A stretch of DNA of 64,000 bases, taken from contig NC_043019.1 in assembly GCF_006345805.1 (NCBI RefSeq), positions 9,423,360-9,487,359 on the forward strand, given 5' to 3'. Below the pieces are notes generated by a model, which was not told the origin of the DNA, ran no database searches, and saw only the letters and a list, made by a program, of their open reading frames with translations. Position numbers and translations under genes: made by a program. Shown here piece after piece: positions 60,658 through 64,000 of the stretch (position 1 is the first letter of the stretch; each line of letters begins with the position of its first letter). This stretch comes from Octopus sinensis (taxonomy: Eukaryota).

Positions 60658-61557
60658 CAGTGCACTTACTGTTAATAAATATTTGAGACAACATCAATAA
60701 TTTGCAGAGATTTCTATCGATATTCTCAGAATGCCTTTTTTCCATTTCTTTTTCCTTTTAACTATTTATATTTTGCCGCTGTAACTTTCTCTTTCTCATC
60801 AAATGTTATTTCAGAATGTTACTTCGCTGATAAATATTTTCGTTTGCAAATCAAACCATTTTTCCTTACTTATCTTATCCGATAACTTTATGAACACAGA
60901 ACAAAAACTCAACGCAAAGATTATCTTGGTTTTGCTAGTTGTATTAGCGTTCACAGGATTACCTGATTAGTCATGTACACAGTATTGCTGTATTGTGTGT
61001 GCATATGATATGATTGATATATATATATATATATATACAGATAGATAGATAAAGAGAGAGAGAGAGAACATGAGTAAGTTCCCCTAAAGTCCTTAATCTT
61101 TACGAACAATCTTCCACAGTCAACTTGAAGAAGTTGATCCTGTTAAGTTGGTGAATAAATTGGGACTGGAATCGTTTGCGAATGTTTCGTTCTGTTCTAA
61201 AAGAGATTTCACTCTGTGATTGCCAAATATTCATAGACTAACATTGGTCTGATTACACATAATTTGGAAAGTCTGCGTGTGTATGGATCATTTCAACGTT
61301 TCTGGGACAATGTGTGAATACATTGCGAAAGTTAAAAAGACAAAATTAAGTGCTAATTAAGTTACTAAATGGCAGGAATATTGAGACCGGCTTGTCTAAC
61401 TCAGCCAATTTTCCCAAAAGTCCATATCAATTCATTCATATGTGGTTGTACACATGACCTCAGAACCTCACCGGACGTAACTAGATACCGCAAACCATGT
61501 TAGCTTCAAATGATAACATGCTTATGTCGGTGAAATAATAATGATAATAACAACAAC

Positions 61558-61596
<39 letters not shown>

Positions 61597-61645
61597 CTAA
61601 ACTGTTTTTGTTTTTTGTGAATATATGAAATGATGATAATAATAA

Positions 61646-61673
61646 TTATTTTTGTTCTCTTTTCCAGGTAAGT
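61646..61673 (+). promoter_or_regulatory. Candidate recursive splice site (ratchet point): 3' acceptor fused to a 5' donor
   Basis: TTATTTTTGTTCTCTTTTCCAG|GTAAGT with the junction at 61667/61668. There is no AG from 61504 to 61665. It is on the same strand as cpo, 37.7 kb after the exon-1 donor. Confidence 0.55.
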
Positions 61674-61712
61674 TGAATTTCTTCAGCAATTTATTGTCGA
61701 ACAGAATATCAG
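61668..61712 (+). other. Candidate 45-nt cryptic RS/poison exon
   Basis: Bounded by the acceptor above and a downstream CAG|GTAAAC donor (GT at 61713). In the phase-0 cpo frame it reads GTA AGT TGA, giving a stop at codon 3. Confidence 0.4.
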
Positions 61713-61784
61713 GTAAACCAATGTTTTATCGGCTTCCTTACATGTCATTTTCAGTGTGCGTGTGTGTGTTCCTCTCAGCCTATT

Positions 61785-61824
<40 letters not shown>

Positions 61825-63377: not shown

Positions 63378-64000
63378 TGTGTCAAGGTCTCTGAAAAATA
63401 GACTGGGAATAACAAACCCGCGTATTCACACACATAAGTTATAACGTGTGTGTGTTTAAATATGTATGCAGGATGGGGAGAGAGAGAGAGACAGACAGAC
63501 AGAGCGCGTGTGAGAGAGAAGACCAGGCCAAAAGACTAAATCGTAAACCCTTGAACAAAGTGGTTAGTCCAGTCGTACTGGTTTTCATGTCATTATTACA
63601 GAACAATAGAATGTATCTGTGTTTCGATTTAGTAGGGATCACACAACCAGGATGGTAGGATGGAAGTGTAGCGTAGATAGAGAGAGAGAGAGAGAGAGAG
63701 AGGTAAGTAGGTAGGTAGGTAGAATGGTGGGTCCCTACGAGTAAGACCAGACCAGTTTTAACAAGCTATTGTTTTTCTCAGAGTAAATTCTTGCAGTCGA
63801 CTCTGGTACTGATTAATTCTCCTCGGGTCAATACGCCGTGCGCAGTGAATTCGCGTCCGATCTCATTAATGGCTCCTATCGTTAAAGTATTCGACATTAT
63901 GTTCAAATTAGAAATAACAACCTTGCCAGAGAGAAATCATCCTGCAGACAGCAACCAGCAAGATTTTTCTGATGAAAAAGTTCACCCAATTCAGTTTCTG

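Follow-up and report, generated by a model that had tools for sequence, protein, structure and literature searches.

Background

The closest described counterparts of the element reported here are the ratchet points of Drosophila (Burnette 2005; Duff 2015; Joseph 2018/2021; Pai 2018), at which a long pyrimidine tract with TT at positions -5 and -6 leads into YAG/GTAAGT, deep within introns of more than 40 kb in neural and developmental genes, the cpo/RBPMS family included. The element lies in the first coding intron of the couch potato (cpo) gene of Octopus sinensis, in a stretch of 64,000 nt (assembly GCF_006345805.1, contig NC_043019.1, positions 9,423,360 to 9,487,359 of the forward strand) that is called the window below; all octopus coordinates are positions within it. 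We judge that positions 61646-61718 probably constitute a recursive splice site (ratchet point) with a short, stop-containing cryptic exon. This reading draws on the splice signals, on their rarity, on the gene context and on an equivalent GTAAGT-initial exon that is used in the cpo gene of cuttlefish.

Fly ratchet points have TT at -5 and -6 in 99.5% of cases and branch points mostly at -21 to -36 (Duff et al. preprint), and 63% of fly introns longer than 40 kb carry a recursive site (Pai et al. 2018). They are defined through a cryptic exon of ~50 nt whose donor is weaker than the regenerated one, and the content of these recursive splice (RS) exons is unconserved, frame-breaking or stop-containing (Joseph et al. 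2021). Drosophila cpo is itself recursively spliced, at two ratchet points, and is not among the genes listed in the supplements of Pai et al. 2018. The octopus site shares with these systems the tract, the TT, the YAG/GTAAGT junction, the gene family and the position deep in an intron of more than 40 kb, as well as a cryptic exon (45 nt) with a stop codon (TGA) and a donor weaker than the regenerated one (3.7 versus 7.7 bits). It differs in belonging to the phylum Mollusca and in being the single such candidate in 37.7 kb. Recursive segments in flies are usually shorter than 37.7 kb.

Three other systems are relevant to the comparison. The Ubx micro-exons mI and mII (Hatton 1998) are alternative exons whose first bases form a consensus donor that is regenerated at the upstream junction, and they are both included and skipped. 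The cuttlefish exon described below resembles them in each of these respects; including the octopus element, in contrast, would introduce nonsense and not coding sequence. Vertebrate RS-exons (Sibley 2015; Blazquez 2018) occur in long neural genes and involve exon definition, competition between regenerated and downstream donors, and stop-containing cryptic exons that lead to nonsense-mediated decay (NMD), all of which have counterparts in the model proposed here. According to reviews, vertebrate recursive sites lack the fly consensus, whereas the octopus site is fly-like in strength. Poison cassette exons, which are coupled to NMD, are likewise short and have their in-frame stop a long way upstream of the final junction, but a donor at the first base is not required of them.

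Gene context and anatomy of the candidate site

The first coding exon of cpo in the window encodes the peptide MRSNEMTAHTSPSLNTETSISLSQSMDSVNTTPEEE. Annotated couch potato proteins from Octopus bimaculoides and O. sinensis have the identical N-terminus, and that of Argonauta is nearly the same. The pieces that follow this peptide in octopod proteins, namely the micro-exons LSTLTTRGQFE and TEENLTSTETSPT and the RRM exon VRTLFVSGLP, are encoded nowhere in the window. The first coding intron is therefore longer than 40 kb and extends past position 64000. A 100-N assembly gap at about 29300-29400, with low-complexity repeats on either side, lies inside this intron, so the length seen in the window is a minimum. 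The features on which the argument depends are the following.

23830-23937, + strand: coding part of the first cpo coding exon, 36 codons from ATG to GAG, phase 0
23938-23943, + strand: exon-1 donor GTAAGT (GAG/GTAAGT), 7.7 bits
23938-61667, + strand: proposed first recursive segment, 37,730 nt, which would be removed when exon 1 joins 61668
61504-61665, + strand: AG-free zone of 162 nt, with (AAT)21 inside; the preceding AG is at 61502-61503
61639-61648, + strand: candidate branch-point adenosines A61639, A61642, A61645 and A61648, in UAAU and UUAU contexts
61646-61667, + strand: polypyrimidine tract and CAG acceptor, TT at -5 and -6, 9.8 bits
61668-61673, + strand: proposed ratchet-point donor GTAAGT, from its sequence and matrix score
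61668-61712, + strand: candidate cryptic recursive exon, 45 nt, with an in-frame TGA at 61674-61676
61713-61718, + strand: downstream donor CAG/GTAAAC, 3.7 bits, candidate definer of the 45-nt exon

The acceptor (...cttttCCAG, with the CAG at 61665-61667) has pyrimidines at 18 of the 20 positions of 61646-61665 and at 16 of the 17 positions of 61649-61665, and the (AAT)21 run occupies 61534-61596 of the AG-free zone. The four candidate branch-point adenosines sit 20 to 29 nt ahead of the junction, which would place them at or near the range of fly recursive lariats (-21 to -36). The acceptor is juxtaposed directly to GTAAGT, on the cpo sense strand and 37,730 nt from the exon-1 donor (61668 minus 23938), and ligation of exon 1 to 61668 would give GAG/GTAAGT, a 9-mer identical to the native exon-1 donor. 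The 45-nt interval opens with GTAAGTTG and closes with CAG. Read in the phase-0 frame of exon 1 (GTA AGT TGA...), it encodes VS, a stop at codon 3 and then ISSAIYCRTEYQ. If the interval were included, the TGA would lie more than 50 nt upstream of the last junction, with many exons downstream, as is the case for poison exons. The GTAAAC at 61713 is a real-looking but weak donor by its score. Between 23938 and 61667 the window scan returned no annotated cpo coding exon and no second strong AG/GT site.

These results agree with an earlier sequence-only reading of the same DNA, which had placed the site on the sense strand of a cephalopod cpo gene, 37.7 kb into an intron of more than 40 kb, and had described the pyrimidine tract, the CAG, the GTAAGT at 61668, the 162-nt AG-free zone with its (AAT)n run, and a second donor 45 nt further on with a TGA at codon 3. 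Each of these points is borne out by the present analysis.

Splice-signal strength and chance expectation

Every AG/GT in the window was scored on both strands with an acceptor position weight matrix (PWM) covering -20 to -3 and a donor PWM in which the end of exon 1 (GAG) served as the -3 to -1 context. For calibration we used the Sepia pharaonis cpo locus L006 (110 kb), with junctions mapped from transcript L005, which aligns to the S. pharaonis genome at 98-100% identity. Counting both strands, the two scans took in 348 kb of cpo DNA from octopus and cuttlefish and 783 AG/GT sites. The candidate has a joint score of 17.5 bits, of which the acceptor contributes 9.8 and the regenerated donor 7.7. 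The runner-up reaches 7.9 bits among the 333 AG/GT sites of the window and 9.0 bits among the 450 of the Sepia locus, such that nothing in the 348 kb comes within 8 bits of the candidate. Real Sepia cpo acceptors (n = 9) range from -1.3 to 13.2 bits with a mean of 5.4, and the candidate acceptor scores higher than eight of the nine; real donors from the same gene (n = 8) range from 0.9 to 7.9 bits with a mean of 4.9, the regenerated donor (7.7 bits) coming close to the best of them.

The number of such sites expected by chance was obtained by convolution of the acceptor scores seen in the scan with hexamer probabilities derived from base composition. Sites of at least 17.5 bits are expected 0.0066 times in the intron part of the window and 0.0185 times on its whole + strand, the latter value being higher because stretches rich in CT/TC score very highly as pseudo-acceptors. 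A donor at least as strong as GTAAAC occurs within 25-100 nt with a probability of ~0.10, and requiring it as well lowers the expectation to ~0.0007 per intron stretch. The candidate is thus an extreme score outlier, beyond chance expectation. The in-frame TGA is uninformative, since a stop is expected in 13 random codons with a probability of ~0.59.

An explanation that we regard as unlikely is that the two signals are juxtaposed by chance in AT-rich, microsatellite-rich and possibly repeat-borne intron DNA, and that the site is rarely or never used. A genome of several Gb must hold some sites of this kind, and the pyrimidine tract adjoins (AAT)21 and T-rich low-complexity DNA. Further, AGGTAAGT occurs six times in both strands of the window where ~2.5 occurrences are expected from composition, so a k-mer bias does exist. 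These considerations are countered by the low expectations given above, by the 8-bit gap between the candidate and every other site, and by the use of an equivalent element in cuttlefish cpo. Nor is the site part of a repeat within the window, in which the 1.4 kb around it have no second copy.

A GTAAGT-initial exon in cuttlefish couch potato

Three decapodiform cpo proteins (P0138, P0146 and P0147) have a 13-residue insert, VSCDQIAFALPDQ, between ...TPEEE and VRTLFVSGLP. The corresponding transcripts L001 and L004 (Logan) and L003 (JGI sample 3300018952) read ...GAAGAGGAG/GTAAGTTGCGACCAAATTGCCTTCGCACTACCCGACCAG/GTACGGAC..., and their junctions run from exon 1 (GAGGAG) into GTAAGTTGCGACC...GACCAG and on to GTACGG of the RRM exon. 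The insert is encoded by an alternative exon of 39 nt (GTAAGTTGCGACCAAATTGCC...) that has GTAAGT as its first six bases, begins with the same GTAAGTTG as the octopus interval and, like it, ends in CAG. Cuttlefish-type transcripts with this exon come from four samples, in which it is located as follows.

L001, 374-412: 39-nt exon
L003, 368-406: 39-nt exon
L004, 667-705: 39-nt exon
L002, 76-114: 39-nt exon

Transcript L002 is partly spliced. It starts within the intron (...ttttaacattcttttgctttcttgtag/GTAAGTTGCG...) and retains the upstream intron up to the exon (...cattcttttgctttcttgtag/GTAAGT), whereas the downstream intron has been removed and the exon's 3' end is already spliced to the RRM exon. 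The cuttlefish exon is thus defined as a unit, with a donor of its own that can be used while the upstream intron is still in place. Its acceptor in L002 is a pyrimidine tract followed by TAG (...ttcttGTAG) with TT at -5 and -6, and it scores 7.3 bits. The exon is skipped in L005/P0007 and in P0006. It is located more than 10 kb upstream of the RRM exon, since the 10-kb flank in L006 does not contain it.

The coding sequences of L001, L004 and L005 are 99.4-99.9% identical to one another, which together with the genome mapping of L005 identifies them as S. pharaonis or a very close relative; L002, from a run in the same series as L005, probably has the same origin. The coding sequence of L003 is ~95% identical to the others and therefore represents a second species. 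The 39-nt exon is identical in L003, where ~1.8 differences would be expected, so this identity is not significant.

The joining of exon 1 to a GTAAGT-initial exon in these transcripts establishes that an exon of the recursive type is recognised and used in the same cpo intron of another coleoid. It is expressed in the manner of Ubx mI and mII in L001, L003 and L004, whereas the octopus element is not so expressed in the isoforms available. Elsewhere in the window, likeness to the cuttlefish exon was limited to chance matches of 8-12 nt.

The cuttlefish data also give substance to an alternative, namely that the octopus element is an ordinary or decayed cassette exon, the counterpart of the cuttlefish micro-exon with TGC changed to TGA, which is skipped conventionally and whose initial GTAAGT never acts as a donor. 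In cuttlefish the exon is an ordinary alternative exon that codes in frame; the octopus interval likewise has a length divisible by three, and its codon 3 is one base away from that of cuttlefish (TGA versus TGC). L002 uses the downstream donor of the exon before the upstream intron is removed. In mammals, repression of regenerated donors by the exon junction complex is documented and, according to reviews, maintains RS-exon inclusion. However, base composition predicts that an exon will open with GTAAGT at a frequency of ~3.4e-4, yet this start is found in octopus and cuttlefish, and octopus exon 1 and the cuttlefish transcripts alike regenerate GAG/GTAAGT. The downstream octopus donor is far weaker than the regenerated one, and none of ~40 annotated octopod isoforms contains the exon. 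We therefore give conventional skipping a low probability.

A third alternative, that the sequence upstream of 61667 is a non-coding first exon with GTAAGT at 61668 as its donor, is very improbable: although cephalopod cpo has several first exons (MTLQSVK, MVEENLPSAFW/MGEENLPIAFW, MHKCMDSKVV) and non-coding ones would be invisible in protein data, the upstream 160 nt, with (AAT)21, a T-run, the pyrimidine tract with CAG and the AG-free zone, have the anatomy of an acceptor rather than of an exon or promoter, and the known alternative first exons map nowhere in the window.

Proposed splicing pathway

Under the recursive reading that we favour, U2AF and U2 would recognise the pyrimidine tract with its CAG and a UAAU-type branch point, while binding of U1 to the weak donor at 61713 would help to define the 45-nt unit by exon definition. 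The exon-1 donor (23937/23938) would then be ligated to 61668 with release of a 37.7-kb lariat. The resulting junction would re-create GAG/GTAAGT, which is predicted to outcompete CAG/GTAAAC. A second reaction from 61668 to the next exon would remove the 45 nt together with the remaining intron and leave no trace in the mRNA. Occasional use of GTAAAC would instead include the 45 nt, and the TGA at codon 3 would truncate the protein to 38 residues, presumably with NMD of the transcript. We infer the use of the site in octopus, the order of these steps, the competition between donors and the decay of the nonsense product from the signals and from the systems described above.

Several points weigh against this pathway. 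Motif strength alone is no proof, and the PWMs are generic metazoan matrices, which serve for ranking only and whose check was confined to Sepia cpo (8 donors, 9 acceptors). Octopus and cuttlefish have just YAG/GTAAGTTG in common in their elements: an alignment of the exon bodies as good as the real one was obtained in 4496 of 5000 shuffles, and one of the upstream 70 nt in 1473 of 5000. Orthology of the octopus site with the cuttlefish exon is accordingly plausible from the sequences, and unproven. The existence of cuttlefish transcripts with and without the exon does not prove re-splicing either, because conventional skipping yields identical products. In mammals, just nine intronic ratchet points that are fully suppressed have been noted definitively (Joseph et al. 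2021), and ~400 YAG/GT junctions were examined in a brain study. The protein collection that was searched contains no octopod cpo transcript contigs, and a cryptic or poison exon is not expected in protein sets. The proposal of recursive splicing made in the sequence-only reading has gained from the score statistics, from the fit to published ratchet-point rules and from the GTAAGT-initial exon of cuttlefish.

Octopod isoforms and searches for products

The 45-nt exon is present in 0 of the ~40 annotated octopod isoforms, and no insert starting with VS follows ...TPEEE in the isoforms seen of O. bimaculoides, O. sinensis, O. vulgaris and Argonauta. Exact look-up of the predicted truncated products of 38 and 33 residues and of the exon-1 read-through open reading frames (ORFs) found none of them in the protein collection. 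A homology search with a 122-residue pseudo-ORF that spans the site gave no match, and two metagenome scans, one for the junction of exon 1 with GTAAGTTG and one for the cuttlefish exon, returned 0 matches.

Between exon 1 and the RRM exon, octopod isoforms combine the micro-exons LSTLTTRGQFE (33 nt) and TEENLTSTETSPT (39 nt) in various ways (P0009-P0015, P0121-P0137). None of the cuttlefish transcripts seen contains either of them. Octopus (MVEENLPSAFW) and cuttlefish (MGEENLPIAFW) share a conserved alternative first exon. None of the alternative first exons MTLQSVK, MVEENLPSAFW and MHKCMDSKVV is encoded in the window, in which a frame at 43574-43603 (L-EENLPI-RTV) resembles M(V/G)EENLP(S/I)AFW and has neither an ATG nor a donor; this likeness is probably a chance match of six residues.

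In S. pharaonis, the RRM exon (L006 9971-10048) itself starts with GTACGG and has a weak acceptor of 1.8 bits. The first intron 3' of this exon measures 29.3 kb and is devoid of strong AG/GT sites, hence a ratchet-like motif is not a property of every long cpo intron.

Other features of the window

The site is followed directly by (GT)n/(AC)n microsatellites, in which Rfam models mir-466 and mir-297 give sub-threshold matches (61741-61821). Their scores of ~30 bits, compared with gathering scores of 85-90, mark them as repeat artefacts and not as microRNA genes. No Rfam family reached its threshold in the site region, the sub-threshold matches being confined to (TG)n, and a non-coding RNA reading of the site was rejected on this basis. 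The fold z-score at the site is -2.1, a value driven by pairing of the downstream (GU)n and (CA)n. Recoding of the TGA by A-to-I editing received no support, as the fold has no extended duplex there and just a 6-bp hairpin.

Upstream of cpo exon 1, a direct duplication is present with its copies ~1 kb apart (12843-13683 and 13870-14928); AG/GTAAGT occurs in identical contexts in both, at 13135 and 14113, and long segments of their ORFs are identical. The region from 15300 to 21500, also upstream of exon 1, contains several kb of strand-biased, CT/TC-rich low-complexity DNA. The GC skew of the window is +0.53 at 16-18 kb and -0.42 at 20-22 kb. Six intronic ORFs that appear transposon-like by eye had 0 matches to Pfam.

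Arthropod inserts and the possible age of the element

Arthropod cpo isoforms also have inserts at the junction that is equivalent to the position of the octopus candidate and the cuttlefish exon, and several of these begin with VS or VR. The insert-bearing proteins include those of ticks (P0187, P0200, P0209, P0172), Penaeus (P0175, P0242), Ornithodoros (P0191, P0230) and Procambarus (P0174, P0190). The tick inserts VSVPRCCSCSLEPCGLHS and VRHKLPNFYDAVMERME and the shrimp insert VSRAMSRKR... directly follow ...EEE, and the crayfish insert VREVVMPL... comes after an earlier insert, QFCPLSQ. In Ornithodoros the insert starts VRHKL.... Judging from these residues, the arthropod VS and VR inserts could be encoded by GTAAGT- or GTAAGA-initial exons. 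The cpo gene is long in these lineages as well as in octopods: it spans 248 kb in Penaeus and 194 kb in Ornithodoros, the whole gene occupies 389 kb in Argonauta, and in O. vulgaris it extends over more than 244 kb when counted from an internal first exon.

A tentative extension of the recursive reading, to which we assign a rather low likelihood, is that the octopus and cuttlefish elements are a single ancient recursive exon, shared since the ancestor of octopods and decapodiforms and maybe since the protostome ancestor. The deeper origin may hold in view of the recursive splicing of Drosophila cpo and of the VS or VR with which tick and shrimp inserts begin. An ancient exon of this kind might, just as tentatively, have switched its body between a coding micro-exon (cuttlefish, VSCDQIAFALPDQ) and a ratchet-poison exon (octopus, with its TGA) while the acceptor and the GTAAGTTG core were kept.

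Implications

Recursive splicing is documented in insects and vertebrates, and we found no report of it for molluscs or other lophotrochozoans. In the searchable literature no paper combines recursive splicing with octopus, and co-mentions with cephalopod, mollusc or squid are incidental or confined to reference lists, in agreement with the sequence-only reading, which knew of no description of the process in cephalopods. From its sequence, the octopus site is a probable instance of a mechanism known from flies and vertebrates in a phylum for which no report was found. Cephalopod neural genes contain some of the longest invertebrate introns. A motif of fly strength in octopus cpo, whose Drosophila orthologue undergoes recursive splicing, provides a concrete test locus, to which the cuttlefish exon adds.

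The locus raises the question of whether the stepwise removal of introns is ancestral to bilaterians or has arisen recurrently as introns grew. A second question is whether a single element may serve by turns as a coding micro-exon and as a silent ratchet. Sites of this type would explain saw-tooth coverage and spurious 'pseudo-exons' in the annotation of cephalopod genomes, and inclusion of the stop-containing exon could tune the dosage of cpo.

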